Shown here: positions 12,537 to 31,232 of the stretch, in pieces
Layout: every line of letters begins with the position of its first letter
How positions within the stretch are numbered: the stretch's first letter is position 1
Sequence record: NC_047995.1
DNA: 64,000 nt
Strand: one strand, 5' to 3'
The notes under the pieces: generated by a model
The model's database searches: none
Told to the model about the DNA's origin: nothing
The model's input: only the letters and a program-made list of their open reading frames with translations
Translations under genes and position numbers: made by a program

Positions 12537-12552
12537 TAATTTCGACAGGTCA
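12537..12552 (+). promoter_or_regulatory. candidate promoter motif TAATTT-CGAC-AGGTCA upstream of the cmoA operon
   Basis: Lies in the 41-nt intergenic gap; matches the motif upstream of virion genes. Confidence 0.5.
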
Positions 12553-12574: not shown

Positions 12575-13345
12575 ATGAGCAACGTTGATCAAACAATGCC
12601 ACAAGGCCGCTGGGAATTTAATGAGCCAGTTGCTGCTGTCTTCGATAACATGCTGCAAAACTCAATTCCATCGTATGACCGTATGCGTGATCTGACCTAC
12701 CGTCTGGGTCGTCAGTTCGTAACTCCAGGTACTGCGATTGTTGATTTGGGTGCGTCACTCGGTCGTGCTATCGAACCGTTCTGTGCTGAGTTCGGCGAGT
12801 ACATGTACCATCATGCGGCAGATCGTCCTGAGCCTGATTCTGAAACAGGTAACCACTACTGCTGCTACGAAGTAGCGCCTGCCATGCTTGAGCGCCTGCG
12901 CCAAAACGAAGTGCTGGCTAAAGCGAACGCCAAAATCAGTAGCGAGTCTCTGGTCGAAGTGGACACCTTCCGATTCGACGAGCAGGTTGAATGCTCACTT
13001 ATCCTGAGTGTACTGACTCTCCAGTTCACTCCTATCGAACACCGTCAACACATCCTTGAGAAGGTCTATGACTCTCTGGAGAAAGGTGGTGCTTTCATTC
13101 TGGTTGAGAAAGTGTTGGGTGACGACAACTTCCTTGACCGTCTGCTGGTAGACACCTACTACGGCATGAAAGGCGACAACGGTTACTCGCAGGAATCTAT
13201 TGCGACTAAGCGTAAAGCCCTTGAAGGCGTACTGGTGCCTGTGAAAGCTGCATGGAACGAAGAACTGCTGCGCAAAGCTGGCTTCAACCGTGTGGAATGT
13301 TTCTACCGCGACCTGAACTTTGCTGGATGGATCGCAGTCAAATAA
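12575..13345 (+). CDS. cmoA: carboxy-S-adenosyl-L-methionine synthase (CmoA-like)
   Basis: WEFNEPVAAVFDNMLQNSIPSY (E. coli [22 protein letters not shown]), DLGASLG, TLQF, LVEK, TKRKALEGVL with the Arg equivalent to E. coli R199, C-terminal LNFAGWIAVK. Confidence 0.88.
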   Translation: MSNVDQTMPQGRWEFNEPVAAVFDNMLQNSIPSYDRMRDLTYRLGRQFVTPGTAIVDLGASLGRAIEPFCAEFGEYMYHHAADRPEPDSETGNHYCCYEVAPAMLERLRQNEVLAKANAKISSESLVEVDTFRFDEQVECSLILSVLTLQFTPIEHRQHILEKVYDSLEKGGAFILVEKVLGDDNFLDRLLVDTYYGMKGDNGYSQESIATKRKALEGVLVPVKAAWNEELLRKAGFNRVECFYRDLNFAGWIAVK

Positions 13346-13356
13346 GGTAAACCGAT

Positions 13357-14412
13357 ATGAACGTAAGTGGTGATATCTATAACATCCCTCAACCGTTCGC
13401 CATGTATTGTGGCAACTGTGAAACTCGTGCTCAGGCTAAAGTAGCTGCGGGCACAATCGAATGGGCGCGTGATAAAGTCTGCTGTGTAGTCGCAGACGAC
13501 AACGGCCTATTCCCGGACATGCCTCATGTTAACGTGGCGAGTATTCATGCAACCGATGCTGAAACTCTGGTGATTGGCTGCGCCCCTTTTGGCGGTAAGA
13601 TCGACGAGCAAATGGATAGTGCAATTCGTAGCGCTATCTATCGTGGTCGCAACATCGCTGCTGCTATGCACACGCGTCTGGCAGATAATCCTGAATACGT
13701 TGAGCTGGCCGATCGCTACAACGTCAAGCTGTATGACTTCCGTCATCGTCCTGATGCGTACCCGCTCGGTACTGGCGAGAAGCGTAACGGCATTCGTCTG
13801 CTGACTGTAGGCACTGATAGTTCTTGCGGTAAGAAGTTCACGACGCTGACTCTGCATCGTGCGCTGAAAGAACGACACGACGACACGGTGTTCTGCTCTA
13901 CTGGCCAGACTGGTTTCCTGATTAGCGACTGCGGTATCAACAACGATACGCTGGTGGCTGACTTCCTTGCAGGTGCTGCTGAGTCGCTGTCTCCTGAAGG
14001 TCCAGTTGATCGTGTGTACCTGATTGAAGGTCAAGGTGCTATCACCCACCCAGCGTACACTGGCGGTAGCATGAGCCTGATTGCTGGCTCGCAGCCTGAC
14101 TACTTCATCATGTGCCATGCGTGGGAACGTAAGACTCAGCTTGGCGTTAATCGCGTACCTAACCTGGTGTTCGAACTGAAAGCCAACATGGACGCTGCTG
14201 CAATACACGGCCTGACGCCTAAGTATCTCGGCATCAGCATCAACTTCTCTGAGTGTGATGCGACTCTGGAACAACAGGACCAGATCATGCGTGACCTTGA
14301 AATAGAGTTCGGCATGCCTGTGTTCGACCCGCTGCGCAACGTCATGGTAGTTGAAGAACTGGCGAACGCCCTCCATGCAGAAGCAATGCGTCGGAGTGCA
14401 GAGAATGGCTAA
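13357..14412 (+). CDS. DUF1611 family P-loop protein (DgcN-like)
   Basis: LLTVGTDSSCGKKFTT, FCSTGQTG, DFLAGAAE, LIEGQGAITHPAY, GSQPDYFIMCH are DUF1611 hallmarks. Confidence 0.85.
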   Translation: MNVSGDIYNIPQPFAMYCGNCETRAQAKVAAGTIEWARDKVCCVVADDNGLFPDMPHVNVASIHATDAETLVIGCAPFGGKIDEQMDSAIRSAIYRGRNIAAAMHTRLADNPEYVELADRYNVKLYDFRHRPDAYPLGTGEKRNGIRLLTVGTDSSCGKKFTTLTLHRALKERHDDTVFCSTGQTGFLISDCGINNDTLVADFLAGAAESLSPEGPVDRVYLIEGQGAITHPAYTGGSMSLIAGSQPDYFIMCHAWERKTQLGVNRVPNLVFELKANMDAAAIHGLTPKYLGISINFSECDATLEQQDQIMRDLEIEFGMPVFDPLRNVMVVEELANALHAEAMRRSAENG

Positions 14413-15274
14413 ACATCCTCTTCGCAAGCTGTTCGAACAGCACGTAAAGAAAGAGGTCAAAGCCAAAGAAGTGGCCGTTCTGCTTTCGAGCGGCCTCGAT
14501 GGTTTGGTTAGCGCACTGGCTGCGCATGATCTCGGCATGAAAGTTCACGCCTTCACTTTTCAGATGGGCGAGGAGCAGAGCTTTGACAGCAAACACGCCC
14601 GCATCGTCGCAGAGAAGATGGGTTGGTCGTTCACTCTAGTCAAGGTGCCTACGTCTGACACGGCAATCGCCAAAGGCTGGAAACTGCTTCACGCAAACTT
14701 CCGCTGTTTGAAAAAGCGTGACTTCGAATGCGCGTACCCTATGGTGTACTGCTATAAAGCAATCAAAGACGCTGGCTTGAAGTATGTGCTGTCCGGTCTG
14801 GTGGCTGACGGTTACTTCCTGTATAACCGCAACACGCACATCCAGAAAGTAAGCGGCCCGCATTCCGTCGCTGAAAAGTACCATGCGTATCGCACTGAAT
14901 ACTTCCGACCGTGGATCAAAAGCGGTAAGAAGTCTCTCGGCGTTGATGGATATAACCCGAGCGGTATGCTGCAACACGAAATGCTATGTGATCACTTCGG
15001 CCTTGTTCACGTTAATCCGTGGATGCAGCCGAAAGTATTTGATTACTTCATCAAGTACACATGGCAAGAGTTAAATATGCCTAAGCAGAAAATGCCAATA
15101 ACAACGGCTTGGGCAGATCACATCGCTATTGTCGGGCATCGCCCGCATCGCGGCTATCAAACAGAAGCTGGAGTGCCTGCGCACTTCGAACGCTTACTGG
15201 ATAATCCTGAGATCAATTTCAACGGTCGCAAGCGCATCATGGATGTGGCCCGCGATTGGTCGACGAGGACTTAA
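14405..15274 (+). CDS. asparagine-synthetase C-terminal-domain-like PP-loop ATPase (no glutaminase domain)
   Basis: PP-loop VLLSSGLDG, VLSGLVADGYF (cf. VLSGEGADELF), GLVHVNPWMQ (cf. GLE.RVPFLD); ATG 14405 overlaps the DUF1611 stop. Confidence 0.75.
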   Translation: MAKHPLRKLFEQHVKKEVKAKEVAVLLSSGLDGLVSALAAHDLGMKVHAFTFQMGEEQSFDSKHARIVAEKMGWSFTLVKVPTSDTAIAKGWKLLHANFRCLKKRDFECAYPMVYCYKAIKDAGLKYVLSGLVADGYFLYNRNTHIQKVSGPHSVAEKYHAYRTEYFRPWIKSGKKSLGVDGYNPSGMLQHEMLCDHFGLVHVNPWMQPKVFDYFIKYTWQELNMPKQKMPITTAWADHIAIVGHRPHRGYQTEAGVPAHFERLLDNPEINFNGRKRIMDVARDWSTRT

Positions 15275-15275
15275 T

Positions 15276-15890
15276 ATGTTTGTACACATCATTGACGGTG
15301 GTATTGGTGGTCAGTATGTTTTCCACCAGTTGCAGGAAGCTGGCATCAACTGTCGTATTCACTCTCCGAACAACAATCGTGTTCGGGCAGTACATGCGCC
15401 TTACCCAGCTCTTTCTATGGGACACACGGAACAGGAAATTGAGAAGCATATCGGTAGCGTGTTAGGCACGTATCGCGGCCTTTTCCTGATCAGCAGTTAT
15501 GTAGGTTCGTTGATTGCTAATCAGATGCTTGACCAGTGCGGTCAGTCTGATAACATCATCACCTGCGACGATCTCAAGTGTGGCTCGATACCTGTCGTTG
15601 CTTCATCCATTTCTGTAAACGTATATCGTAAACAGAGACAACTCGGTCGCATAGCGCATCGCCTGAAACACTTCGACACTGACCATGAGTTCATTGTCGC
15701 AGACAAGGCTGTGCGCTTCGCTGCGGGTTCGGAGTTCGATGAACAAGACGCTCGTAAGGAATTCAACAACAACGCCAAGTTCCTTTCGAGTCCGTCATTG
15801 ATTGTTGCTGCACACAAACTCGGTGTGAAGAACAGTATGTATCACAACTATGCGGGGCTGGTGCGCGAGTTCCTTGAGAAGCGCCAGTAG
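15276..15890 (+). CDS. hypothetical protein with degenerate Rossmann-like N-terminus
   Basis: MFVHIIDGGIGGQYVFHQLQEAG resembles a beta-alpha GxGxxG dinucleotide-binding start; GAGGA RBS. Confidence 0.6.
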   Translation: MFVHIIDGGIGGQYVFHQLQEAGINCRIHSPNNNRVRAVHAPYPALSMGHTEQEIEKHIGSVLGTYRGLFLISSYVGSLIANQMLDQCGQSDNIITCDDLKCGSIPVVASSISVNVYRKQRQLGRIAHRLKHFDTDHEFIVADKAVRFAAGSEFDEQDARKEFNNNAKFLSSPSLIVAAHKLGVKNSMYHNYAGLVREFLEKRQ

Positions 15891-15908
15891 CAGTAACGCG
15901 AGGGCACG

Positions 15909-16172
15909 ATGATTAATCGCTTTCAACTGAAAAAGGTTCCTACGCTTGAAGCGTGTCAGTGGAACGGGGAGAACGTCGAGGAGATGGATAAGTTCCTCGG
16001 CGGTCATGGTTATGTCAAAGGACGTTACGTTGAGATTGGCTTGTTGGATAAGTATCAAAAGCCAACGCTTGCCAACGTGTCTGTAGGCAACTATGCAGTG
16101 AAGTACGAAGACGGTTCGTTCGGAGCACTGACTGCGAGTGAGCTGATGGACAAATACGTTCTGGCTGATTGA
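15909..16172 (+). CDS. conserved phage hypothetical protein
   Basis: KKVPTLEACQWNGEN ... VGNYAVKYEDGSF pattern typical of a widespread small phage family. Confidence 0.75.
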   Translation: MINRFQLKKVPTLEACQWNGENVEEMDKFLGGHGYVKGRYVEIGLLDKYQKPTLANVSVGNYAVKYEDGSFGALTASELMDKYVLAD

Positions 16173-16179
16173 GGACAAG

Positions 16180-16635
16180 ATGAATCTGTTTTCTATTTTA
16201 AAGCAGCAGGTGAAGAAAGCGCTATCGACCGAAGCGAATCACGAACCTGAGATTCGTGCGATGTTTGACTGGCGCTACTCTGTTGAGATCAAGGGCCAGA
16301 TGTACATCGTAGGCAAGACTGGAGCAAACACTTGCTTCTACGTTGAGCCTGGTACCGAAGAGCCCGTAGCGTGTTATCCTGACGCACTGCTTGCCAAGAT
16401 TGACGAGTGGGGTGCGAGCAAGTACGTGTCATTCGCAATCTACTTCAAGCGCTTCGATAGTCCTGTTGCCGAAAACATTAAGACAATCGAAAAGGCAATG
16501 ACAGGTAAACCGAAGACCTTTAAGAAAGGTTACTTCATCTGCGGGGTCACGCCTAAAGGCAAACGTATTAAGCTGTACCGTTTGCATCAAGGCCTGTCTG
16601 GTATGCAGTGGGTTGCAGTGGAGAATAAAGCATGA
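16180..16635 (+). CDS. hypothetical protein
   Basis: 151 aa, GAGGA RBS. Confidence 0.7.
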   Translation: MNLFSILKQQVKKALSTEANHEPEIRAMFDWRYSVEIKGQMYIVGKTGANTCFYVEPGTEEPVACYPDALLAKIDEWGASKYVSFAIYFKRFDSPVAENIKTIEKAMTGKPKTFKKGYFICGVTPKGKRIKLYRLHQGLSGMQWVAVENKA

Positions 16636-16841
16636 GTAAGCGCATTCAATTTCTCTTATCGTGGAGTGCGTTTATCTCCGGCTTGTTTTTGACTTTGGTG
16701 TTCTTCGCTTTGATTGTGTTCAATGTTGTTATGGATATATCGAAGGAAGTAACCACACCGTTGTTGATCGCTCTCGTTATCTGCTTCATTAACAACATGT
16801 CCACTGCGTTCTTGATGCGAAGCAACAACTCTAAACCTTAA
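16632..16841 (+). CDS. small two-TM membrane protein
   Basis: Two hydrophobic segments; ATGA overlap. Confidence 0.7.
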   Translation: MSKRIQFLLSWSAFISGLFLTLVFFALIVFNVVMDISKEVTTPLLIALVICFINNMSTAFLMRSNNSKP

Positions 16842-16872
16842 TCTCACGGTACTGTCCGTGTTAGGAGCAAGT

Positions 16873-17160
16873 ATGATTGACGACATTATTGTAGGCCACA
16901 TTTATAAATCATCTAATGGCTATCCATATAAAGTGGAAGGTCGCGCCGAACACGGACAAAACCCAGAAGACAATCGGGTGCAACTCCATAACTTGACCGA
17001 AACTCCCTTGTATACCAAAGGACATAAGTTCAGTATGCGAGAGTCCGAGTTCAAGGCAGCCTTCTCTGTGTATACAGAAGGAGAGTACCATGAACACAAC
17101 GTTAAGGCATCATCTGAAATGCCGCCACTTCGATCCTGCATTCTACCATTGCTGGGTTAG
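16873..17160 (+). CDS. DUF1653-like small protein
   Basis: GHIYKSSNGYPYKVEGRAEH ... MRESEFKAAF; AGGAG RBS. Confidence 0.55.
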   Translation: MIDDIIVGHIYKSSNGYPYKVEGRAEHGQNPEDNRVQLHNLTETPLYTKGHKFSMRESEFKAAFSVYTEGEYHEHNVKASSEMPPLRSCILPLLG

Positions 17161-17603
17161 CGAAACGCAAATGACCGTGCCGTTGTTCTCGTTTGATAGA
17201 GCAATGCGCGGTCTACAGGTCTACACACCAGATGCACCTAAGCACGATAAGAATCCGAAAGCCTGTCGTTACTTCACGCGAGCGTTCGGCGGCAAGCAGT
17301 TGGTGTGGGGATCAGAAATTAAACCTGAACGGGTCGACCGTGTTCTTAACTGAGTCTGTCTTCAAGGCGTGTGCGTTACATCGTCTTGGACTCAATGCTT
17401 GGTCCGTTCTTGGTTCAAACGTGAGCGAGTACCTGCACCACCAGCTTCGCATGTTGGGTCTACGTTTCGTCTGCTTAGGCGATAACGATAAAGCAGGGCA
17501 GGAGTTTAGTCAGACGTTTGGACTAGGCGCTGTCAGCAATGACCTTGACGAGATGCCTGATGAACAGCTACTCGATCTAACTTTACCCTTCCTGAGGAAG
17601 TAG
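17090..17603 (+). pseudogene. small primase-like TOPRIM protein split by a +1 frameshift near 17316-17318
   Basis: ORF 17090..17353 gives the N-half (MTVPLFSFDRAMRGLQVY ... RYFT ... VWGSE). The overlapping frame gives TOPRIM VFLTESVFKA ... VLGS ... LGDNDKAG ... NDLDE. Removing one A from GAAATTA fuses them. Confidence 0.7.
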
Positions 17604-17605
17604 AA

Positions 17606-18034
17606 ATGTCACGAGAAGTTATTGTCCGTATCTTAGGACCTGTTGGTGTTGGCAAGTCGGCTGTGTACGCGACTTTGGTTAACGCTCTATCTCAAATCGG
17701 TGTTAGCGTTAAACACGCAGACGAGAAAGCGTGGACAGCACTGGAGAACGCTGGTGAAGTTGAGCTGTCTGCCGAAACGCTGAACGAACTCACTCCTGTT
17801 GTGACCTTCGAAGAAGTTGGTATTCGTACCGACGCTGCTGCTTCTCCAAATCAGATCATGCAGTATTTCGCATACGCTCACCTGCCGCCACATCTGCAAG
17901 CGGTAAGCAAGCCGTTCGCGTTGCTGGCACAAGAGATGGATCAGAACCTGCCAAACGGTCCTGAGAAGTCTACTGGTCTGCGCAAGTTGCTCGAAGCGAA
18001 AGACTGCATGGTACGTCAACTCGTAGCGAAGTAA
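17606..18034 (+). CDS. two-domain protein: P-loop-like N-terminus plus helical C-terminal domain (possibly Acb2-like)
   Basis: ILGPVGVGKS; C-terminal YFAYAHLPPHLQAVSKPF ... GPEKSTGLRKLLEAKDCMVR. Confidence 0.7.
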   Translation: MSREVIVRILGPVGVGKSAVYATLVNALSQIGVSVKHADEKAWTALENAGEVELSAETLNELTPVVTFEEVGIRTDAAASPNQIMQYFAYAHLPPHLQAVSKPFALLAQEMDQNLPNGPEKSTGLRKLLEAKDCMVRQLVAK

Positions 18035-18045
18035 TGGAGGCGATC

Positions 18046-18072
18046 ATGAGCGATTGGTTCTACGGCGGTTAA
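18046..18072 (+). CDS. possible 8-aa micro-ORF MSDWFYGG
   Basis: GGAGG RBS 5 nt before the ATG; followed by a terminator. Confidence 0.3.
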   Translation: MSDWFYGG

Positions 18073-18082
18073 TCTGCATAAC

Positions 18083-18107
18083 AAAGGGTGCCCTCGGGTG
18101 CCCTTTT
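18083..18107 (+). terminator. intrinsic terminator
   Basis: AAAGGGTGCC-CTCG-GGTGCCCTTTT hairpin with T-tract. Confidence 0.8.
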
Positions 18108-18150
18108 CTGATCTTAGACAACTAAAATAAGCCCAAAAGGACCATGCAGA

Positions 18151-18192
18151 ACCGTGCGTAAACAGTATAGAACCATGTGTAGGCAGCGTAGA
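18151..18192. repeat. degenerate 21-nt tandem repeat in intergenic DNA
   Basis: ACCGTGCGTAAACAGTATAGA / ACCATGTGTAGGCAGCGTAGA, 15/21 identical, plus a partial ACCATGCAGA at 18141. Confidence 0.35.
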
Positions 18193-18229
18193 AACACCAC
18201 CTTTTTTCTAAGCAGCATCAAGCGCTTGA

Positions 18230-18241
18230 AATCTGTAAATA
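18230..18241 (+). promoter_or_regulatory. candidate promoter motif AATCTGTAAATA
   Basis: Exact copy 18 nt before the dam ATG, followed by AAGGAG. Confidence 0.6.
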
Positions 18242-18259
18242 CTGATAAAGGAGAGAAAA

Positions 18260-19102
18260 ATGACAGTAATAAGTCCAATCCGTTATCAGGGCAATAAGCG
18301 CAGCCTCATTCCTATTATTCTCGAAAACACACCGTCAGTAAAAGACTGTCCACGGATGGTCGATGTGTTTGGTGGTAGCGCTACTGTCTGTGCGAACATG
18401 CCGCAGAAGTTTCGCGTATACAACGAACTTAGTCCTCAGGTATTTGATATCGTCAAGATGCTGGTGGAACAGGAGCCTAAGAAAACGTTGGGCCAAGTCA
18501 AGCGACTGGTCAAACACTGGTGCCTGACGAACAGCAACGAAGAAAACTACGATGCGTTCCGTACAGTCGTCCAGAAGAAGCGCACGGCAATCCTGCATTA
18601 CGTTGCACATCGACACGCGCACTCGAACATGCTGCGCTTCAATCAGCAAGGCGTGTACAACGTGGGCTTTGGTGATCGTGGTCTGATTGGTAAGTTCGAC
18701 GAACTCGAACACGAACTCACGTCCTTCCACCAGCACATGAAAGGCGTTCACCTGACGAACATGAAGTACGGTAAGTTGCTTGGTCGTCTCGGCAATCAAC
18801 TGGACTGCAACACGTTCTGCTACTTCGACCCGCCTTATCTGGCGAGTGGTGCAATGCAGTACGGTAAGTGGACCGAAGCTAACGAACGCAACCTGCTGGC
18901 AACGCTTGAACAACTGAACCGCTTGGGCGTACCGTGGATGTTGAGCAACGTCATAGAGCACCGAGAGTTCTCGAACGATCTGCTAAAGCGTTGGCTAAAG
19001 AAACACGCGACGACCGTGCTCTACCCAAACAAAAGTTATGCGATGAACAACGGCCAGAGTGGTTCGCATAGTACGATTGAAATTCTGGCGATGAACTACT
19101 GA
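18260..19102 (+). CDS. dam: Dam-like (D12 class) N6-adenine DNA methyltransferase
   Basis: SPIRYQGNK, DVFGGS, RFNQQGVYNVGFG, CYFDPPY, WMLSN. Confidence 0.9.
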   Translation: MTVISPIRYQGNKRSLIPIILENTPSVKDCPRMVDVFGGSATVCANMPQKFRVYNELSPQVFDIVKMLVEQEPKKTLGQVKRLVKHWCLTNSNEENYDAFRTVVQKKRTAILHYVAHRHAHSNMLRFNQQGVYNVGFGDRGLIGKFDELEHELTSFHQHMKGVHLTNMKYGKLLGRLGNQLDCNTFCYFDPPYLASGAMQYGKWTEANERNLLATLEQLNRLGVPWMLSNVIEHREFSNDLLKRWLKKHATTVLYPNKSYAMNNGQSGSHSTIEILAMNY

Positions 19103-19109
19103 GGAAGCA

Positions 19110-19799
19110 ATGATGGAACAAGAAATGAAAGACATGCCTGTACATATCGTTAACGGTTTCCAGTTCAGCGATAACTCCGCGCACCTCCTGTCCTACGCTC
19201 TGGACATGGCACGACTCGGCGGTAAGATTGGTCCTGAGTTCTGGGAAACCCACATCGTTGAGAACGTTGGTAAAACTTCAATGTCTGACATTATGCTGAT
19301 CAGCGGGCCTGTTATTCGTGCTAAAGATTTTAGCATGTTCGACAACATCGAACAGTGCTGCAAAGATGCGCAGGTTGTTTTCGAAGCTCTGTTGTACGGC
19401 TTTGATACGCTGATGCAGGAGTTCCGCACGGCGTTTGTAGACGAGGCTCCACACAAGCCTTGTGCCAGCATGTTGGTCAGTAAGGCTTTCAGTAACGAAC
19501 TGCTGTCATACCTGACGCGCCCCGCCGAAGAAGGTGATATGGAACTGCTGGACGTGTATCGCCGTCAAGCGTGTGCTCTGGTGGACGGCGAGCCTGTCAT
19601 CATGCGACTGCGACTGCCAGGCAATACGCAGTATCTCTGGAACGGTGAATGGCGTGCGCATTGCAAATCCGTAGAAGATGTTCGCGCACAACACTTCAAT
19701 AGTTGGTACTACAACCACGCGTTCACTAAGCATCGTATGCAGGCTCTGTCCAACAGCTACCTGTACACCAAACACTCTGAACACTTCAACCGAGGTTAA
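19110..19799 (+). CDS. hypothetical protein
   Basis: 229 aa, GAGGA RBS. Confidence 0.75.
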   Translation: MMEQEMKDMPVHIVNGFQFSDNSAHLLSYALDMARLGGKIGPEFWETHIVENVGKTSMSDIMLISGPVIRAKDFSMFDNIEQCCKDAQVVFEALLYGFDTLMQEFRTAFVDEAPHKPCASMLVSKAFSNELLSYLTRPAEEGDMELLDVYRRQACALVDGEPVIMRLRLPGNTQYLWNGEWRAHCKSVEDVRAQHFNSWYYNHAFTKHRMQALSNSYLYTKHSEHFNRG

Positions 19800-19801
19800 T
19801 C

Positions 19802-20278: not shown

Positions 20279-20666
20279 AGCAACCGACTCCGAAGTACGT
20301 GCGTACTACCAGAAGCAACATGATCGGGCAGAAGCCACTATGCGAGAAATCTGGGCGCTGCGTGGTTGGACGATTCGCTGGGAATGGCACAATGGAGTAT
20401 GTGACGACTGCGAGTTCCTATTTGATGAAACAGGCAAGCAGATGTTCCCGTACCATGACGCGATTCCGCAGACACATTCGATTGGCAGTTATATTGAGAA
20501 GCATCGCCTCAATGTTACGTTCACGAAGAAATCTGTAAAATTGATTAACAAGCAAGACCCCAACCCAGTTGAAGGTAAAGCCGACACATTACGTCAGGCA
20601 TATCTCAACTGGTTGCTTGCACTGGAAAAGCAGAAAGCTGAGGAGAAAACGTGCGCTGCGATCTGA
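20256..20666 (+). CDS. hypothetical protein
   Basis: In-frame ATG 20256 after AGGAG within track ORF 20175..20666. Confidence 0.65.
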   Translation: MYHPLGDKATDSEVRAYYQKQHDRAEATMREIWALRGWTIRWEWHNGVCDDCEFLFDETGKQMFPYHDAIPQTHSIGSYIEKHRLNVTFTKKSVKLINKQDPNPVEGKADTLRQAYLNWLLALEKQKAEEKTCAAI

Positions 20667-21172
20667 AAGAATTACCATTAGCATTAGACCAAGCTGAACA
20701 TATCATGGCGAGTGTTTTCACGCTGGCCGCTTCATCTAAATCGAAGCGTCGTGCAACTGCCGCCCTGCTCATCCATTTCCACAACGGCTTCCCGACTATT
20801 GTGAGTAGTGGTGTTAACGGCACTGAGCCTGGCACAAGCAACGTCATGGAGAACGATGATCTGACGCTCTCGCTCAACACTGTCATCCATGCTGAGGAGA
20901 ACTGCCTCAATCGCATGGAAGAATACAGTCTGTGGGCGAACGAAGAGGACATCCTGTTCTGCACAGATTCCCCTTGCCCTAATTGTCTGGCTTACCTTGA
21001 GTGCGAAGGCGTTAAGACCGTTGTGTATGCGCGTGAGTACCGCCTGACTGATCATCTGGACGCATCTGATATCAAGATGTTCTGTCTGGACATGAAGTCA
21101 GTAGAGCATCGTATGCTTCGCGGCATCGAGCGCATGAACGAAGTTATCGCAACAACACCAGCGTCTGAATAA
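20651..21172 (+). CDS. dCMP deaminase
   Basis: GVNGT, zinc motifs HAEENCL and SPCPNC, YAREY. Confidence 0.9.
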   Translation: MRCDLKELPLALDQAEHIMASVFTLAASSKSKRRATAALLIHFHNGFPTIVSSGVNGTEPGTSNVMENDDLTLSLNTVIHAEENCLNRMEEYSLWANEEDILFCTDSPCPNCLAYLECEGVKTVVYAREYRLTDHLDASDIKMFCLDMKSVEHRMLRGIERMNEVIATTPASE

Positions 21173-21193
21173 GACCAATAAGAGGTACTAACC

Positions 21194-21868: not shown

Positions 21869-21877
21869 GGAACTATT

Positions 21878-22521: not shown

Positions 22522-22524
22522 CTC

Positions 22525-22552
22525 ATGGGGCCTAGTGCCCCATTTCTGTTTT
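22525..22552 (+). terminator. intrinsic terminator
   Basis: ATGGGGC-CTAGT-GCCCCAT followed by TTCTGTTTT. Confidence 0.7.
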
Positions 22553-22561
22553 GAGGGAATC

Positions 22562-24652: not shown

Positions 24653-25029
24653 AAGAGTTCTTGTTGTCTATCTGGAACGCGCCTTTCTGGGACGAGCCTG
24701 TTAGCGCGTTCGTCGTGCCTGTGTGCGTCATCTCGTACTTTGTGATCGAACACTATCTGGAGAAACGTGCGCTGCGTCTGTCTCGCGCTGTGTTTGCTTC
24801 GGGCTGGAATCCTGTCAAAGGCACGGAGTACCGTCATCGCTTTCTGCCTTGGCGTGCCTGTCGTCTGTGCTACACGTCGAACAGCCCGAATGATAAGTTC
24901 ATGCCGTCTGTCGTGATTGATGTTGAGCGTGGTGGTATCGTAGAGCTGCCAGCACACGTCTTCCGTTTTCGCTATAGAGAGATTGAAAATGCCAACTCCA
25001 GTGATTCTACTCAAACAGCAGACTCGTGA
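24649..25029 (+). CDS. hypothetical membrane-anchored protein
   Basis: ATGA overlap; hydrophobic segment at residues 17-32. Confidence 0.65.
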   Translation: MKEFLLSIWNAPFWDEPVSAFVVPVCVISYFVIEHYLEKRALRLSRAVFASGWNPVKGTEYRHRFLPWRACRLCYTSNSPNDKFMPSVVIDVERGGIVELPAHVFRFRYREIENANSSDSTQTADS

Positions 25030-25333
25030 TCTGCTGTTGAAGATGTTCGGTCAGAACAAGCCGTTCATCGTCGTGCGTCGTGATGCCATTGTTGAAGAAG
25101 GAAAATCATTCGGAGATCGTGTGTACTTCTCCAACGGTACCAACACTGTTACTGTGCCAAACATTCAGGGCCTTGACCTGGGTGATAAGCTCTACGTCGC
25201 AGAAGACGGTGACGTGTATGAGTGGCATCCTCATTTCGAGCGTCCGTACGAAGCTGTGTCAAACAATCAGACCGAAGCGCTCGCGTTTGGTCTTCATCCC
25301 ATTATCTTCCATACTGACAGTCGGAATATCTAA
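24983..25333 (+). CDS. hypothetical protein
   Basis: 116 aa; TAATG coupling to thyA. Confidence 0.65.
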   Translation: MKMPTPVILLKQQTRDLLLKMFGQNKPFIVVRRDAIVEEGKSFGDRVYFSNGTNTVTVPNIQGLDLGDKLYVAEDGDVYEWHPHFERPYEAVSNNQTEALAFGLHPIIFHTDSRNI

Positions 25334-26430
25334 TGTCACAACCTCTTGATCTACGCAACCCAAACCACTTCGAACTGTACTCCCTGCACTGTGTTGACGA
25401 GCAGTACATCAACCTGTGTGACGCTATCATTGCTACAGGTACGCAAGAGTCTGACCCTGCGCGTACCACTGACGAATGGCTGACGCTGATCGGCGTTGGC
25501 TTCCAGTTGCAAAATACCCACATCGCTTTCCCTGCGCTACTCGGCGCACGTAAGAACTGGTCGGCTGCCGTCGATGAATCATGCTGGATGATGCGCGGTG
25601 AAACGAACATCGAATCACTCAACTCTAAAATCTGGGACTTGTGGGCAGACGAATCTGGTGAGTGTGGGCCAATCTACGGCGAACAGTGGCGCCGTTGGCC
25701 TGATATCAAAGCGTTTCACGACTTCACCAAACCTTCTGGTGTTTGTCCTTCGGCGGACGCTATTCGTGTGCGTGATGAAATCCTGCGTATGCGTGAAGAC
25801 GGCTATATCGAAACGCAACTAGCTGACGGTCGCATCCTGTTTGAAGGTCAGATCGATCAGTTTGCCAATGCGCTGTACCAGATTAAAAGCCGCTCGCGTT
25901 CTCGTCGCATACGTGTTCAGGCGTTCAATCCTTCTTATGTGAATATGCAGGGCTTGCCTCCGTGCCACACAGAGTTTGAGTTTAACGTAACGAAGTCAAC
26001 TCGCTACGAACAGGCTCAGGCAGAAGCACGGGGACAAGTTGTTGCAGAAGACAGTCTTCATATCACGGTCCAGCTCAGATCAAATGATTGTCTACTCGGG
26101 CGCCCATTTAACATCATGGGCTACAGCGCAATGCACCAGATGATCGCGAAGTGGGCCGGTCTGAATGTTGGTGGCTTTACGCTTAACTCTACCAACACTC
26201 ACCTGTATACGCACCACATCGAAGCGTATCAGACGCAACGCGCTCAGTGGATGCTGTTGCGTGAGCGTATGCAGAAGACTGGTGAGCCTGTTAAATACCC
26301 TATTCTGGAAATCAGCGACGACATTCTCGGCCTGACGCCAGAGCAGTTACTCGATAACGCAAACGTAGACTGGTTCGAGCTGGTGGACTACAGCCCTCAG
26401 CCTGCGGTCAAAGGACGTGTGACCAAATGA
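25333..26430 (+). CDS. thyA: thymidylate synthase
   Basis: IWDLWAD, GPIYGEQWR, catalytic LPPCH, LRSNDCLLGRPFN (Asn = dUMP specificity), THLYTHH. Confidence 0.93.
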   Translation: MSQPLDLRNPNHFELYSLHCVDEQYINLCDAIIATGTQESDPARTTDEWLTLIGVGFQLQNTHIAFPALLGARKNWSAAVDESCWMMRGETNIESLNSKIWDLWADESGECGPIYGEQWRRWPDIKAFHDFTKPSGVCPSADAIRVRDEILRMREDGYIETQLADGRILFEGQIDQFANALYQIKSRSRSRRIRVQAFNPSYVNMQGLPPCHTEFEFNVTKSTRYEQAQAEARGQVVAEDSLHITVQLRSNDCLLGRPFNIMGYSAMHQMIAKWAGLNVGGFTLNSTNTHLYTHHIEAYQTQRAQWMLLRERMQKTGEPVKYPILEISDDILGLTPEQLLDNANVDWFELVDYSPQPAVKGRVTK

Positions 26431-27083
26431 AAAACATCATGTTGATCCAGCGTATCAGCGCCTTCCTGTACGTCGGCTTTGCAGAAAACATCCCTGACAT
26501 TCCTCGTCGCGGTGTTGAGAAGTTCGACGTGCTGATTCCTGACGGCCGTGGCTTTGAGGAGCACGGTCCTATCCTGACGATGAAGGCGCGTTGCATCTAC
26601 CACCTGACTCACAACTGCTTCCTGATTCAGCGTACTAATGATGATAACAGTGGCGCACACGAACATCCTGCGCTGATGAAGTCTCACTGCAAGTACAACA
26701 TGGAACTGTTCCAGCGTTCCGAGCACGGCCGTGAGCAAATCGCGGTGCAGCAGATTCTGAACGAGCTGCATGATGCAGAAGTGCAGCATCCTCAGTGGCC
26801 GGAAGAAGCGATTCACGCGGCGTCTATCGTTACGGAAGAAGCGGGCGAGTTGCTGCGCGACTGCGCTACCTTCGAAGAAAATGGTGACCAGCGTCTGATC
26901 GTTAACATGCTGGGTGAAGCTACGCAGGTCGGCGCAATGGCAGTTCGCTTCATGAAGAATCTGCCTACCTCTCAGCGTCGTACTATCCCTAACAATGCGC
27001 TGCGCTCAATCCTGGACTCTGACATGACGCCAGAGCAACAACTGATTGAAGTGCGCCGCCTGATGAATGACGGAGTTCAGTAA
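26427..27083 (+). CDS. MazG-like NTP pyrophosphohydrolase domain protein with N-terminal extension
   Basis: IVTEEAGEL ... GEATQVGAMAVRF helical EExxE-type motif. Confidence 0.65.
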   Translation: MKNIMLIQRISAFLYVGFAENIPDIPRRGVEKFDVLIPDGRGFEEHGPILTMKARCIYHLTHNCFLIQRTNDDNSGAHEHPALMKSHCKYNMELFQRSEHGREQIAVQQILNELHDAEVQHPQWPEEAIHAASIVTEEAGELLRDCATFEENGDQRLIVNMLGEATQVGAMAVRFMKNLPTSQRRTIPNNALRSILDSDMTPEQQLIEVRRLMNDGVQ

Positions 27084-27973
27084 TGCGTTTACTCTCATAC
27101 GGAGCATGTGGTGGTACACCCTTTCGTCGTCTGGTAGTTAAAGACGATGGCCAGTTTGAAGTCGGCGTTCATCCTAAGATTGAAGCGTTCGGCTGTGTGT
27201 TCACTAACGTTAACGTCGGTCGTATTGCTGATGATGCCGTAGAGTTCGATCTGCCCGATTCTGGTGACTGGGCTATCGACATGGCTGATTACTTCCTGTC
27301 GCCTGAATACAAGCAGTGGGTAGGTGGACATACTCCACGTATCGAAACGATGCTGGATGCGCACGTCATCAAAGGCAAGCTGCCTACGCTGGTGCAGGAC
27401 TACGATGCGTTCTATGCTGACCTCCAGCAGAAGATCAACGCGCTCGATCTGCCTGACATTGTGTTTGAACACAACACGATTAAGCAGACGAGCCTGAACC
27501 AAAAGTTCGATGTGTGGATGCTGTACAAGTACAACCTGATGCTTGACGGCAAGATCTCTGTTACGCGTTCGAACGTAGGTGAGCTGGTCTTCCAAGAAGA
27601 CTTCATCTCCGCTAAAGGCACAACGTGGTGGTTGCGTGAGCACAACAAGCAACTGATGGAGCTGGCTGCGCGTCATGACATGCTGGCTGCATTCATTACG
27701 TTCGGCGTATCGCATCGCAACCAACAAGAGTTCTTCTACTCGTTTATCACAAACGAAGGTGATCAGACGCAGCGTCCTGTTGAACCCGCCGAGTTCCTCC
27801 ACATGTCGGTGCACGGTCAGTTCCCAGAGCTGGTCATCACTGATCGTGGTAAGGACTACAATCTGGCAGTTAACTACAGACAGTTCTTCCCAGAGTCGTA
27901 TCACACTCTGAAAGACGCCGTTCACATAACCATTGGCAGTAACTACGCACTGAACCTCTTGCGCTTTATCTGA
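27083..27973 (+). CDS. hypothetical protein
   Basis: 296 aa, TAATG coupling. Confidence 0.75.
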   Translation: MRLLSYGACGGTPFRRLVVKDDGQFEVGVHPKIEAFGCVFTNVNVGRIADDAVEFDLPDSGDWAIDMADYFLSPEYKQWVGGHTPRIETMLDAHVIKGKLPTLVQDYDAFYADLQQKINALDLPDIVFEHNTIKQTSLNQKFDVWMLYKYNLMLDGKISVTRSNVGELVFQEDFISAKGTTWWLREHNKQLMELAARHDMLAAFITFGVSHRNQQEFFYSFITNEGDQTQRPVEPAEFLHMSVHGQFPELVITDRGKDYNLAVNYRQFFPESYHTLKDAVHITIGSNYALNLLRFI

Positions 27974-27990
27974 TGGCCAGAGTCTCTCAG

Positions 27991-27996
27991 TAATTT
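27991..27996 (+). promoter_or_regulatory. candidate TAATTT promoter motif upstream of the 28022-ParB-MTase operon
   Basis: In the 48-nt intergenic gap, CAGTAATTTAAG context as in the other copies. Confidence 0.45.
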
Positions 27997-28021
27997 AAGT
28001 TTCAACAAAGGGAGACTCGCC

Positions 28022-28357
28022 ATGCAATACGATAAGACGAAAGATTTTCAGCCATTCCGCTATCTGGGCGCGCCTAAGCTGCCCACTGTTGGGTTCATCG
28101 CTAACACTGTGATGCTTGTCGAGCAGGATGTACTGATCGGCCACGACGAGTGTGAGTTCCAGTTCACTGTGGAGCAGATGAACACGATGGACAGAGGTAC
28201 TGTGACGTTCCGTGCGAAAGATATGGGCGGCGGTATCACGATAAAGAAATGCTCGGTCTCTGGATTGAAAATGGTAATTAAGCTGGACAGACGTGTAGTG
28301 CAGTTCGGCAAAGTACAAGTCGAGTGGTCTACTGTCAGCCGCAAATACCTTTATTAA
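28022..28357 (+). CDS. hypothetical protein
   Basis: 111 aa, GGGAG RBS. Confidence 0.7.
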   Translation: MQYDKTKDFQPFRYLGAPKLPTVGFIANTVMLVEQDVLIGHDECEFQFTVEQMNTMDRGTVTFRAKDMGGGITIKKCSVSGLKMVIKLDRRVVQFGKVQVEWSTVSRKYLY

Positions 28358-28399
28358 TCTGTAAAGACAGAGAAAGAGCAACCACAAGAGATACGACTA

Positions 28400-29101
28400 A
28401 TGGCAAAAATTGCTAAAGCAAAGGAAGGGAAAAAGAAAAGCGCTATGAAGTTTGACTTGGGAAAACTCAAGACAGCTTCACAACTGAAAGGCGCTGACTA
28501 TAACCCGCGTTTTATTACCGACAGTCGCCTGCGAGCACTCGAAAGTTCTTTGGGTAGCTTCGGTGACCTGTCTGGTATTGTGTTCAACAACAGCGTAAAG
28601 TCTGGCGTGTTGATCTCAGGCCACCAGCGCTTGAAATCAATTGACGGTTGGAAGACTCGTATCGAGATTCAACCTGCGTCCGATAAGCACGGCACTGTTG
28701 GTCTGGGCTACATTCATGCCACGCACCCGAAGAAAGCAGAGAAGGTAATCAGCATCCCTCTGCGTGTCGTTAACTGGAACGATAAGAAGTCCGAGTATGC
28801 TGCGAACATCGCGGCGAATGCTCATGGCGGTGAGTTCGATAACAAGAAACTCGCCAAGCTGGTGGAGAAGCTGGACTTGACCACAATCAAGCCTCAGTTA
28901 CTCGGCCTTGACCCGCTGGAAATTCGCGGTCTGCAACAGAAGCTGAAAGGTCAGGCTGCCGTTGTCGATCAGGAACGTGCTGGTAAGACTACTGGTCAGA
29001 TGAACGGTAGTAGCGGTTCGTTCAAAGAGTACGGCGCTGACGATGTAGGTGAGAGCCTGAACTGCACCTGCCCGCGTTGTGGATTTAAGTTCGAGGGATA
29101 A
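28400..29101 (+). CDS. ParB/Sulfiredoxin-like N-terminal domain protein with C-terminal CxCPxC zinc motif
   Basis: ADYNPR, SLGSFG, LISGHQRL, NIAAN ... GGEFD; ends CTCPRCGFKF. Confidence 0.8.
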   Translation: MAKIAKAKEGKKKSAMKFDLGKLKTASQLKGADYNPRFITDSRLRALESSLGSFGDLSGIVFNNSVKSGVLISGHQRLKSIDGWKTRIEIQPASDKHGTVGLGYIHATHPKKAEKVISIPLRVVNWNDKKSEYAANIAANAHGGEFDNKKLAKLVEKLDLTTIKPQLLGLDPLEIRGLQQKLKGQAAVVDQERAGKTTGQMNGSSGSFKEYGADDVGESLNCTCPRCGFKFEG

Positions 29102-29102
29102 T

Positions 29103-31232
29103 ATGATCATCAAGCCGCCTACTATGAAGGAAATCAACAAGCTGGATAAACCCTGGCGTGGTATGAGTTTCTTCGCAGGTTGCGGTGGGTCTTCTACCGG
29201 TCACAAGATGGCCGGTATCAACATCCTGTTGAGTAACGAGTTCGTGGACTCTGCCCGCGAATCTTACGAAGCAAACCATCCGACCACCAAAGTGCTGCCT
29301 CATGATATCCGTCGTCTGGACCCAAGCAAGCTCATGCGTTATTGTGGCTTGGCGAAAGGCGAGCTGGATTTACTTGATGGTAGTCCTCCGTGCTTTACCG
29401 AAGACACGATCATTCATACAGCAGACGGCATGAAGTTCATCTCGGACATGAATGTCGGCGATCAAGCAATGACCTCAGTTGGTCGTTACTTCCCTGTGTA
29501 CGATACGATGGTGCGTCCATACGTCGGTACGATGCACAAGATCGAAACGCTGATTAGCACGAACAACGCAACTCCCGAGCATCCATTCTTCGTGCGTCGT
29601 AGCACTGCACCTGGCGAATATAGCGAGCCATTCTGGTGTGATGCAAAAGACGTGCAAGAAGGTGACTTAGTTGGTACTCCGCGCACGACGCCTGACATGG
29701 GCCTCGCTGTGTATGAAGATCAGCTGGCACAACTGCCGAAGCAGATTGCAGAGTGGGTAACATTCCCAGAGTTCTGGTGGATGATTGGTCACTGGTGTGA
29801 TCGTGGTTCAATTGAAACTGTTAGCGGCGTTGAAGTCGTTAGCTTTGAATCGCATTCAAGCCTTGAGAATGCGATGATTGAGCAGGCGTTTGATGCGATG
29901 AAGATCAGCAGCCTGAATCGTATTGACACGATGACAGCACAACGCAAAACGTTCCGTATCGTTATGGACGCAGAGCTGGTGCAGTTCTTACGTCGATTCG
30001 TATCTCAAGGCTACAACAAATTCTCTCGTCGTCTGCCTGCGATTATCTTCCACATCTCGCAGGAACTAAAGCAGCAATTCATTCTCGGTTGTGCTGGTCA
30101 TGACTACGTGACTGCGATGGGTGCTGGTCTGTCTATCACGTCTGACTCACGCCGCTTCCTGCTTGAGATGAACTACCTGTGCTGTTCTGCATTCAACAGA
30201 CCTCTGTTCGATGGTCTGACTTGGGGTGACGTGTACTTCGGCCATGCGATGACTCCACGTGATCGTAACAGCTCGAAGCCTCTTATCGGTTACCTGTTCC
30301 TGCAGGACGAGCACAACTTCTTCTATGAGTTCGGTCTGGACGATCCCCACCTGTGGACAGAAGTGATTGAGAACCTCGCGTATCAGGCGACCTGTGACGT
30401 GTACAACTTCTCCGTTGAGACGGACGAGACATACGTTGCTAACAGCGTGGTCGTTCACAACTGCAAAGGCTTCTCTACTGCGGGTGTGAAAGAAGAAGGC
30501 TGGGGCAAGGAAGTTAAGTACAGCGATAACAAGTATCAGCAGGTTGATGACCTGTTCGATCAGTATTGCCGTATGCTCGAAGGTATGCAGCCGAAAGTGT
30601 TCACTGCGGAAAACGTTAGCGGCCTCGTTAAAGGTGCGTCGAAAGGCTACTTCATTGAAATCATGAAGGAGTTCGACCGTCTGGGCTATTACGTGCGAGC
30701 GCCTATGCTCAATGCAGCGTGGCTTGGTGTGCCGCAATCCCGTGAGCGTATCATCTTCATGGGCGTCCGCAAAGACGTAGCGAAAGCACTCGGGTACACA
30801 ACGGCTGCTAAGGCTGTGCCTGATGTTATTCCGTGTGATAGCATGGCATTCCTTGCAGACGCTCTGCCTCACATACAGCGTTACAAGTCAACGAAGAAAG
30901 ATATCATCACCTATCTTCCTGCGATGAATGGTCCGATGCCTACGATTACTGCCGCCGATGCGATTGCGTATGAGACTGCGCGATTCTCGTCTGCTGGCTT
31001 TGTCGAAGATAACAAAGGCCACAGGCGTAAGTTGACTATCGACGAACTCAAAGTGATCTCTGGCCTGCCGTCAGACTACAAACTGAAAGGCAAGTTCGAG
31101 GAGCAGTGGGAACGTCTTGGTCGTATCTGTGTGCCTGCAATGACACACGCTGCGGCTAAGGCTCTTATCGAACACATCCTGATTCCTTATGCGAAGAAGC
31201 GTAAGAAGAAGCCAGGCGATATCTTCAAGTAG
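29103..31232 (+). CDS. C5-cytosine DNA methyltransferase-fold enzyme, probable carboxymethyltransferase, intein-containing
   Basis: Motif I FFAGCGG, motif IV GSPP|C after splicing, motif VI AENV, motif VIII QSRER, motif X LGRIC (Arg where Asn is normal, codon 31122-31124); ATG 29103 after GAGGG. Confidence 0.9.
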   Translation: MIIKPPTMKEINKLDKPWRGMSFFAGCGGSSTGHKMAGINILLSNEFVDSARESYEANHPTTKVLPHDIRRLDPSKLMRYCGLAKGELDLLDGSPPCFTEDTIIHTADGMKFISDMNVGDQAMTSVGRYFPVYDTMVRPYVGTMHKIETLISTNNATPEHPFFVRRSTAPGEYSEPFWCDAKDVQEGDLVGTPRTTPDMGLAVYEDQLAQLPKQIAEWVTFPEFWWMIGHWCDRGSIETVSGVEVVSFESHSSLENAMIEQAFDAMKISSLNRIDTMTAQRKTFRIVMDAELVQFLRRFVSQGYNKFSRRLPAIIFHISQELKQQFILGCAGHDYVTAMGAGLSITSDSRRFLLEMNYLCCSAFNRPLFDGLTWGDVYFGHAMTPRDRNSSKPLIGYLFLQDEHNFFYEFGLDDPHLWTEVIENLAYQATCDVYNFSVETDETYVANSVVVHNCKGFSTAGVKEEGWGKEVKYSDNKYQQVDDLFDQYCRMLEGMQPKVFTAENVSGLVKGASKGYFIEIMKEFDRLGYYVRAPMLNAAWLGVPQSRERIIFMGVRKDVAKALGYTTAAKAVPDVIPCDSMAFLADALPHIQRYKSTKKDIITYLPAMNGPMPTITAADAIAYETARFSSAGFVEDNKGHRRKLTIDELKVISGLPSDYKLKGKFEEQWERLGRICVPAMTHAAAKALIEHILIPYAKKRKKKPGDIFK
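29391..30461 (+). mobile_element. intein (357 aa) with degenerate LAGLIDADG region, in the MTase catalytic PC motif
   Basis: Starts CFTEDTII, block B ATPEHPF, block F VYNFSVE, ends VVHN followed by Cys; WMIGHWCDRGS and FILGCAGHD look like decayed blocks C and E. Confidence 0.92.

Follow-up and report, generated by a model that had tools for sequence, protein, structure and literature searches.

Introduction

Natural 5-carboxymethylcytosine (5cxmC), together with its glycine amide, was demonstrated in late 2025, and in one cyanophage only, S-B43. In this phage, CmoA produces carboxy-S-adenosylmethionine (carboxy-SAM, Cx-SAM), CmoX, which accepts Cx-SAM only, writes 5cxmC at GC sites, and CmoY couples glycine to the carboxylate of 5cxmC to give 5-glycylcarboxymethylcytosine; in the virion DNA the glycine amide was found and 5cxmC was not (PMC12783734). 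In the crystal structure of this transferase (SpCmoX, PDB 8YF3), R350 touches the carboxymethyl group at the position where M.HhaI has Asn304 (PMC12783734). The same work surveyed 5,615 CmoX candidates, many with CmoA, ligase and ParB-domain neighbors, and predicted amide decorations beyond glycine without identifying them; Erwinia phages, DUF1611 and inteins are not mentioned therein (PMC12783734). Herein, we analyzed a stretch of 64,000 nucleotides (nt), hereafter the window, which proved identical (100%) to bases 1-64000 of Erwinia phage vB_EamM_Alexandra (NC_047995.1), a jumbo phage of 266.5 kb in the genus Alexandravirus, whose kin are the pEa_SNUABM phages, Dickeya phage AD1, Y3, Yoloswag and Yersinia phage fHe-Yen9-02. 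Judged by its sequence, Alexandra carries a representative of the CmoA-CmoX-CmoY system, which, along with the ParB-domain association, was published in Nature Communications in December 2025, and we put at roughly three in four the probability that it encodes a post-replicative cytosine hypermodification pathway of this type, split over two loci on the plus strand.

The likeness to S-B43 extends to all three families (CmoA, CmoX and CmoY are 30, 35, and 33% identical, respectively), an Arg at the R350 position, an SPPC motif, a ligase without a glutaminase domain, the lack of cmoB, and, as for many CmoX contigs in that paper, a ParB-domain neighbor. The S-B43 genes, however, form one operon, whereas those of Alexandra, a 266-kb jumbo phage on an enterobacterial host, occupy two loci 16 kb apart; moreover, the Alexandra transferase has an intein at its catalytic Cys, and a DgcN/DUF1611 gene stands between cmoA and a ligase of a separate type. 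The closest relative outside the clade is the Pseudomonas jumbo phage PaBG (transferase 49%, CmoA 43%, ParB-like protein 44%, and a gp022 homologue 33% identical, with the GR motif shared), but its cluster is contiguous (ParB-like, C5-methyltransferase, CmoA, gp179, Asn synthase) and has neither an intein nor DUF1611, and its ligase is of another type, 25% identical to gp019. What is new relative to the published system is the intein-split transferase, the strict pairing of a type I ligase with a DgcN-like protein, the exchange of cassettes among near-identical phages, and the gp022 family.

More distant parallels are also informative. With the bacterial CmoA/CmoB pathway for uridine 5-oxyacetic acid (cmo5U) in tRNA, Alexandra shares the Cx-SAM synthase family and its carboxylate-binding Arg, but it has no CmoB, and the predicted acceptor is C5 of DNA cytosine instead of 5-hydroxyuridine (ho5U) in tRNA. 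In M.MpeI N374K, replacement of the motif X Asn by a basic residue likewise lets a cytosine C5-methyltransferase (C5-MTase) use Cx-SAM (cited in PMC12783734); its Lys was engineered into a CG-acting, methyltransferase-derived enzyme, whereas the Arg of gp046 is natural and belongs to the CmoX lineage. Hypermodification based on 5-hydroxymethyldeoxyuridine (5hmdU) or 5-hydroxymethylcytosine (5hmC) also begins with a reactive handle at C5 of a pyrimidine, followed by variable tailoring enzymes (PMC12783734), but the Alexandra handle would be a carboxylate from Cx-SAM, made after replication and tailored by amide ligation.

A putative CmoX-type transferase interrupted by an intein

A preliminary description of the window had reported a C5-MTase at 29103 with LGRIC in motif X, and had noted that a natural cyanophage carboxymethyltransferase, CmoX, has been described. 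Both statements were correct, the latter as described in PMC12783734. Pfam DNA_methylase matched gp046 with an E value of 1e-38, and the spliced-form extein (352 amino acids, aa) retrieved SpCmoX (8YF3, E 7e-60), HaeIII (E 7e-20), DNMT1 (E 1e-11), and HhaI (E 5e-10). The segment ERLGRICVP of gp046 was aligned with ERVGRMVPP of 8YF3, the Arg of which is R350, and in a MAFFT alignment motif X read FGNSVVVP in Dcm from E. coli, LGRICVPA in gp046, VGRMVPPL in SpCmoX, and LGRSVPPL in PaBG. The sequence alignments thus place the Arg, as had been proposed, on the Asn of the Dcm GNSV motif and on SpCmoX R350. Motifs I (FAGCGGSS), IV (SPPCKGFS, after splicing), VI (AENV), and VIII (QSRER) were all intact in the alignment, both features used to filter CmoX sequences in PMC12783734 (SPPC and an Arg at R350) were present in gp046, and ERLGR was unchanged in all five clade members compared. 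The gene directly upstream encodes the ParB-like protein gp045, whose PaBG counterpart similarly precedes the PaBG MTase, and an association of ParBc domains with CmoX has been reported (PMC12783734).

The intein splits gp046 just ahead of the motif IV catalytic Cys (SPP/C...VVHN/CKGFS), and the +1 splice nucleophile, C454 (codon 30462-30464), doubles as this catalytic Cys; with the intein lying between SPP and CKGFS, the precursor should therefore have no active site before splicing, which would make it a neat example of an enzyme inactive until spliced. The intein signatures comprised Cys1 (C97), the TxxH of block B in ATPEHPF, the terminal VVHN453, and the +1 C454. TIGR01443 (intein_Cterm) matched with 23.7 bits, above its cut-off of 15.6, and Pfam Hint_2 and Intein_splicing also matched, the latter below its cut-off, while the intein center of about 200 residues showed no Pfam or PDB sequence match of any kind, so that no homing-endonuclease domain was recognizable. 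The splice residues were invariant across five homologues, including those of AD1, Y3, Yoloswag, and fHe-Yen9-02, at overall identities down to 54-57%. Compared with Alexandra, the inteins of Yoloswag and fHe-Yen9-02 were 36-39% identical and the exteins 75-83%. Because the splice residues and ERLGR stayed constant while the intein diverged, the intein is likely old and still splicing. It was present in 51 of the 51 system-bearing clade records described below, and the PaBG transferase is free of it.

A CmoA homologue without CmoB

The same description had pointed to a CmoA-like gene at 12575 that retains the equivalent of R199, and to the absence of a cmoB-like gene from the window, and these points held as well. 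The closest solved structure for gp017 was E. coli CmoA (EcCmoA; 4GEK, E 1e-30), with CmoA 4IWN and 1IM8 also among the best. In both phmmer and MAFFT alignments, R213 of gp017 (codon 13211-13213) occupied the position of EcCmoA R199, the residue forming a salt bridge with the cofactor carboxylate (PMC3663124), and the CmoA homologues of the Erwinia and Pseudomonas phages retain Arg at this position. Among the 12 cofactor contacts of EcCmoA (Y39, D62, G64, S66, A70, D89, N90, D117, I118, N132, F137, and R199; PMC3663124), seven were identical in gp017 and three were conservatively substituted; N90 and N132 were replaced by Val, and the assayed S-B43 enzyme (SpCmoA) likewise replaces both positions, by Leu. 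A tblastn search of the window with E. coli CmoB detected no homologue (best E value 3.7), and among 50,697 phage records the same query gave a single match, a 3.4-kb Salmonella fragment.

A CmoY-type ligase and its DgcN-like neighbor

The window had been described as carrying a split two-part system. While its CmoA and CmoX parts stand, the system does not consist of two halves only, since gp019 and gp018, downstream of cmoA, had been overlooked, as had the ParB-like gp045 next to the transferase gene. The gp019 protein showed 33% identity to the assayed SpCmoY over 276 residues (blastp, E 2e-48), and Pfam Asn_synthase matched its residues 6-138 (E 9e-14) with no second domain and no glutaminase domain; in SpCmoY, too, the ATP-binding domain is Asn-synthetase-like and no glutaminase domain accompanies it (PMC12783734). 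A sequence search of gp019 against the PDB gave no match. In the PP-loop of nine aligned ligases, the Ser, Gly, and Asp residues were invariant, and the final Ser was replaced by Gly in the type to which gp019 belongs, herein called type I. Since type I ligases form a separate type, with a 13-residue insertion of their own and the altered PP-loop, glycine need not be the amine that they use.

The presence of a CmoY-type gp019, together with the finding that S-B43 virions hold only the glycine amide, suggests that 5cxmC in Alexandra is probably an intermediate handle rather than the end product. The earlier proposal that this phage makes Cx-SAM and writes 5cxmC post-replicatively is supported in its first steps by the homology to the characterized CmoA and SpCmoX, and has to be modified as to its outcome.

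DgcN carries out the acetyl-CoA-dependent N-acetylation of D-glutamate. Its homologue gp018 matched Pfam DUF1611_N (E 1e-17) and DUF1611 (E 8e-48) and, over residues 10-329, PDB 7XRJ (E 3e-50), and it thus has the same two-domain DUF1611 build as the enzyme of the DgcN-DgcA D-glutamate pathway. A D-amino-acid theme is further suggested by the racemase-like neighbor in fuller phage cassettes. However, gp018 sits in a phage DNA-modification cassette, and no DgcA partner adjoins it, its neighbors being the cmoA and ligase genes. DgcN has been described as the key enzyme in a racemization route for D-acidic amino acids (PMC12363236).

Co-inheritance of the two loci

To define the clade, we collected the 58 jumbo-phage records having a homologue of the flanking gene gp011. 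CmoA, CmoY, and CmoX were found all together in the same 51 records (48 Erwinia, two Dickeya AD1, and one Yersinia) and were all missing from the other seven, namely six records of Dickeya JA11/13/29/33 and phage NCTB. The co-occurrence of cmoA and a motif-X-Arg MTase across related phages, named earlier as a check on the proposal, was therefore complete in both directions (both in 51/51, neither in 7/7). In good agreement, these three genes and the ParB-like one appear in Table 5 of the AD1 paper as present in AD1 and Y3 and absent from JA11 (PMC6143709). The ligase gene lies downstream of cmoA in 51 of 51 clade records and also in PaBG, S-B43, and the metagenomic contigs L027 and L030, and the system genes are contiguous in PaBG, S-B43, and L030. 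Because the three genes are inherited together and are adjacent in the latter three, the distance of about 16 kb between the Alexandra loci, which the coordinates confirm (Table 1), represents a rearranged layout of one system.

Table 1. Positions of the system genes and accompanying features in the 64,000-nt window of Erwinia phage Alexandra.
Feature	Position	Strand	Basis or remark
GTAATTT upstream of cmoA	12536..12542	+	TAATTT at 12537, 38 nt before ATG
gp017, CmoA homologue (predicted carboxy-SAM synthase)	12575..13345	+	4GEK, TIGR00740, R199 equivalent
gp018, DgcN/DUF1611 homologue (Rossmann-like N domain and P-loop C domain), accessory to type I ligase	13357..14412	+	Pfam, 7XRJ
gp019, putative CmoY-type AMP-forming amide ligase, 289 aa, type I	14405..15274	+	SpCmoY homology
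gp020, 205 aa, system membership uncertain	15273..15890	+	Trails ligase cassette throughout clade relatives
gp022, orphan-fold protein, 151 aa	16180..16635	+	Recurs in cmoA/cmoY clusters of distant phages
GTAATTT upstream of gp044	27990..27996	+	TAATTT at 27991, in loop of hairpin covering gp044 ribosome-binding site
gp045, ParB-like domain protein, directly upstream of transferase gene	28400..29101	+	PHROG 620 ParB-like, E 2e-31
gp046, putative CmoX-type cytosine C5-carboxymethyltransferase precursor, 709 aa, with intein	29103..31232	+	8YF3 match
Intein, residues 97-453 (357 residues)	29391..30461	+	Splice residues, TIGR01443, Pfam
Arg674 codon (Arg317 after splicing), motif X Asn position	31122..31124	+	Alignment with SpCmoX R350

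Exchange of ligase cassettes among near relatives

CmoA was 92-95% identical among Alexandra, AD1, SNUABM_35, and SNUABM_1; the CmoY proteins of Alexandra and SNUABM_35 shared only 24% identity. The clade has at least three types of ligase, which are exchanged as cassettes between near relatives. Type I, the type of Alexandra, AD1, and the groups of SNUABM_1 and SNUABM_7, never occurs without DUF1611; in some of these phages, a 420-aa protein and an alanine/serine-racemase-like protein of 314 aa are present as well. Type II, found in SNUABM_35, fHe-Yen9-02, and also PaBG, has no extra enzyme, and type III, found in Y3 and Yoloswag, comes with a 2-oxoglutarate (2OG)-Fe(II) oxygenase. When a type I record was defined by a ligase at least 80% identical to gp019, the 34 phage records so identified were the same 34 that have the DUF1611 gene (34/34). 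The Alexandra cassette is a reduced form of type I, consisting of DUF1611 and the ligase only. The 420-aa cassette protein had no Pfam, PHROG, or NCBIfam match.

Metagenomic phage contigs with DUF1611 proteins 44-54% identical to gp018 showed the gene order of an approximately 400-aa GT1-like protein, DUF1611, the racemase-like protein, and a type I ligase (58-70% identical); a scan of IMG/VR with the DUF1611 alignment recovered the same clade only. Contig L027 has CmoA upstream (56% identity), a 3-deoxy-D-arabino-heptulosonate 7-phosphate (DAHP) synthase downstream, and a gp022 homologue. This DAHP synthase (SRR26596593_43232, 10943-11806; 287 aa) comes right after the type I ligase and scored 180 bits against TIGR00034, for which the cut-off is 173. 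DAHP synthase feeds the shikimate pathway and thereby prephenate, the co-substrate of CmoA, and the gene looks like an auxiliary one raising the prephenate supply for Cx-SAM.

Given the exchange of ligase cassettes between close relatives, the sister phages probably carry different final bases. The culturable Erwinia, Dickeya, and Yersinia phages constitute a natural comparison panel, being near-syntenic and having either no system (JA11 type) or one of at least three ligase cassettes, so that each decoration can be compared directly with the others in its chemistry and in its value against restriction. The phages of this clade are candidate agents for fire-blight biocontrol, and heavy adducts on cytosine would have consequences for sequencing and restriction mapping as well as for escape from host defence.

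Proposed pathway and alternative explanations

The sequence homologies, the positions of key residues, the order and co-occurrence of the genes, and the exchange of cassettes were shown above; from them we infer the enzymatic activities, splicing step, amine identity, and biological role as follows. The gp017 enzyme would convert S-adenosylmethionine (SAM) and host prephenate into Cx-SAM. The gp046 precursor, of the 80-kDa class, would have to excise its intein, whereby SPP and CKGFS would be joined to form motif IV. Spliced gp046, probably together with the ParB-like gp045, would then flip out cytosines, its motif IV Cys attacking C6 and the carboxymethyl group of Cx-SAM being transferred to C5, with Arg317 of the spliced protein holding the carboxylate at the position where ordinary methyltransferases have Asn. 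The gp019 ligase would adenylate the new carboxylate and subsequently form an amide bond with an amine, which in the fuller cassettes would probably be a D-amino acid supplied by the alanine/serine-racemase-like enzyme. The gp018 protein might either N-acylate a free amino group on the appended moiety or prepare the amine donor. The bulky final base would shield the genome from host nucleases. As for the acceptor, the thymidylate-synthase homologue gp041 retains the dUMP-specifying Asn and the catalytic Cys; a role as a dCMP hydroxymethylase, which would have removed the substrate of the C5 transferase, was rejected for this reason, and since gp041 is of the dUMP type, cytosine would not be replaced at the nucleotide level and should be available as substrate.

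We further propose, tentatively and at somewhat less than even odds, that a hot-swappable tailoring cassette lies behind cmoA, that the one in Alexandra yields a chemically undescribed base (for example, 5cxmC joined through an amide bond to a diamino acid or a D-amino acid, with subsequent N-acylation) and those in sisters with type II or III ligases yield other bases, that gp022 is a fourth general component, and that splicing gates the transferase.

Several observations weigh against the assignment of these genes to such a pathway. Although the top NCBIfam family of gp017 was CmoA (TIGR00740, E 6e-43), its 147 bits fall below the equivalog cut-off of 193 bits, and NF011995 scored 112 bits against a cut-off of 285. 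The S-B43 CmoA (L003, 5962-6657), which is experimentally active, has a Glu between two Lys residues at the position of EcCmoA R199, and since an active SpCmoA has Glu there, R199 does not strictly mark a Cx-SAM synthase. In gp046, the region between motifs VIII and IX differs from that of SpCmoX, and the PP-loop of gp019 reads SSGLDG against the consensus SGGxDS. The gp018 protein reached 276.7 bits (E 2e-82) with the DgcN model NF041892, below its equivalog cut-off of 480, and was for this reason named DgcN-like and not DgcN. For gp018, both the role and the place in the sequence of steps are guesswork, and its step is the least secure of the proposed mechanism, as no N-acetyltransferase substrate is evident once the ligase has used the sole amine of a simple amino acid; because an N-acetyltransferase requires a free amine, there would have to be a second amine on the appended group, or gp018 would have to act before ligation or possess another activity. 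The racemase-like gene and the gene for the approximately 400-aa protein of the fuller cassettes are missing from Alexandra. In the literature, we found no report on the DNA composition or chemistry of Alexandra or its phage clade, and no CmoX paper later than PMC12783734.

If the pathway stopped at 5cxmC, gp018 and gp019 would be unrelated metabolic neighbors of cmoA. Such an endpoint would draw on the same CmoA and CmoX evidence and would be consistent with the departure of the gp019 PP-loop from the consensus, but we regard it as unlikely, as gp019 is a clear homologue of SpCmoY, a ligase follows cmoA in every clade record with the system and in PaBG, S-B43, L027, and L030, and the S-B43 virion DNA held the amide only. 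The possibility that gp017 mainly drains SAM against SAM-dependent host defences, with DNA modification being secondary, was raised by the authors of PMC12783734 and is compatible with the proposed pathway. As the principal function it appears improbable in view of the strict co-inheritance with the transferase and ligase, and the DAHP synthase beside the cluster of a relative points to demand for the product rather than destruction of the substrate.

Slightly more improbable still is that the CmoA homologue serves RNA, supplying Cx-SAM to host CmoB for modification of U34 in tRNA during infection, with gp046 being an ordinary 5-methylcytosine (5mC) methyltransferase. Synthesis of cmo5U is the classical role of CmoA, RefSeq labels gp017 as a "tRNA methyltransferase," and the enterobacterial host presumably has CmoB, as E. 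coli does. However, gp046 has Arg in place of the motif X Asn and its nearest structure is the Cx-SAM-only SpCmoX, CmoA never occurs without CmoX and CmoY in the clade, the window contains zero tRNA genes, and apart from the 3.4-kb Salmonella fragment the phage records hold no cmoB. Least probable of all, in our estimation, is that gp046 is a disabled relic whose intein no longer splices, such that no transferase is made; while the sub-threshold Pfam Intein_splicing match and the unrecognizable homing-endonuclease domain would fit a relic, all 709 codons are open, none of Cys1, TxxH, HN, and the +1 Cys varies among five homologues with overall identities down to 54-57%, and the exteins have been retained at 75-83% identity.

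The gp022 orphan-fold family

Besides the CmoA-CmoX-CmoY genes, a small family typified by gp022 recurs in the corresponding clusters. The gp022 protein was 33% identical to PaBG_179, which is located between PaBG cmoA and asnS, and 46% identical to the product of a gene in L027. A profile search yielded 83 cluster representatives, which measure 83-183 aa with one exception, a protein of 1881 aa in which a partial match is repeated eight times; a word-based search returned close relatives only. Among the members whose surroundings were inspected, the one in L030 is flanked by CmoA and Asn_synthase and has a C5-MTase nearby, that in L031 follows Asn_synthase, that in L027 follows the DAHP synthase, and two were on short, uninformative contigs. 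In addition, a distant member comes right after the gene for a base glycosyltransferase of the TAGT family, which is TET/JBP-associated, in metagenomic contig L032 (1717-3007). Because this member adjoins the TAGT glycosyltransferase, the family may serve DNA base hypermodification generally, beyond the carboxymethyl route.

No Pfam, PHROG, or NCBIfam family matched gp022. A first AlphaFold2 (AF2) model from seven sequences had a predicted local distance difference test score (pLDDT) of 63, and a fold search on it was meaningless; the model built from a 44-sequence alignment reached a pLDDT of 94. With this model, Foldseek found no PDB match at an E value of 0.001 or better, and the PaBG homologue was the sole match in BFVD. 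Both gp022 and gp018 are candidates for new DNA-tailoring activities.

Neighboring genes and sequence elements

The gp020 gene trails every ligase cassette type in the clade. Its product showed 57-86% identity to its counterparts in AD1, SNUABM_35, SNUABM_1, and Y3 and 30% in fHe-Yen9-02, and had no Pfam, PHROG, or NCBIfam match. The RefSeq start of gp020, a TTG at 15129, overlaps gp019 by 146 nt and is probably too far upstream, the relatives starting at an ATG equivalent to 15273; from there the protein begins with MFVHIIDGGIGG, a possible dinucleotide-binding turn.

The preliminary description had linked the two loci by a shared upstream TAATTT motif, but the motif provides no demonstrable link. 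The second copy precedes gp044, two genes before the MTase, and not the MTase or ParB-like gene itself. No sigma-70-like promoter was predicted at either site, promoter-like sites in the region being fewer than in shuffled sequences, and by our estimate about 0.1 common 7-mers are expected by chance between two upstream regions of approximately 45 nt. We therefore rejected TAATTT as a regulon mark, given the position of the second copy and a 7-mer match that is within chance. The motif is rare on the plus strand of the window (five copies against about 14 expected from base composition), only two copies, both intergenic, fall within 9000-36000, and both are kept in Dickeya phage AD1, as is the surrounding DNA. 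The second copy lies in the loop of an intergenic hairpin at 27974-28021 (AGTCTC ... GAGACT), the 3' arm of which overlaps the gp044 ribosome-binding site. In AD1, the stem reads GTCTCCTGT/ACAGGAGAC and is kept with changes in both arms, and the hairpin may serve to control transcription or translation.

The thymidylate-synthase homologue gp041 has 365 aa, about 100 residues more than E. coli ThyA, accommodated in two insertions, and is followed by gp042 and gp043 (together 25333-27973); no Pfam, PHROG, or NCBIfam family matched gp042-gp044. Between the two loci lie a dCMP deaminase gene (20651-21172) and a Dam-family adenine methyltransferase gene (18260-19102; TIGR00571, E 3e-29, below cut-off), and the Alexandra genome probably carries N6-methyladenine (6mA) as well. 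Two 87-aa open reading frames annotated as "DNA primase" (17090-17603) lie amid unusually long non-coding stretches at 16842-17089 (248 nt) and 18035-18259 (225 nt), the latter containing a GC-rich hairpin with a run of T after it, and this area may consist of gene remnants or a regulatory region. Finally, gp013 (10497-11090) showed a weak Macro-domain match (E 0.02), and as its AD1 and Y3 orthologues are annotated as O-acetyl-ADP-ribose deacetylases, it may counteract host defence that relies on ADP-ribosylation.

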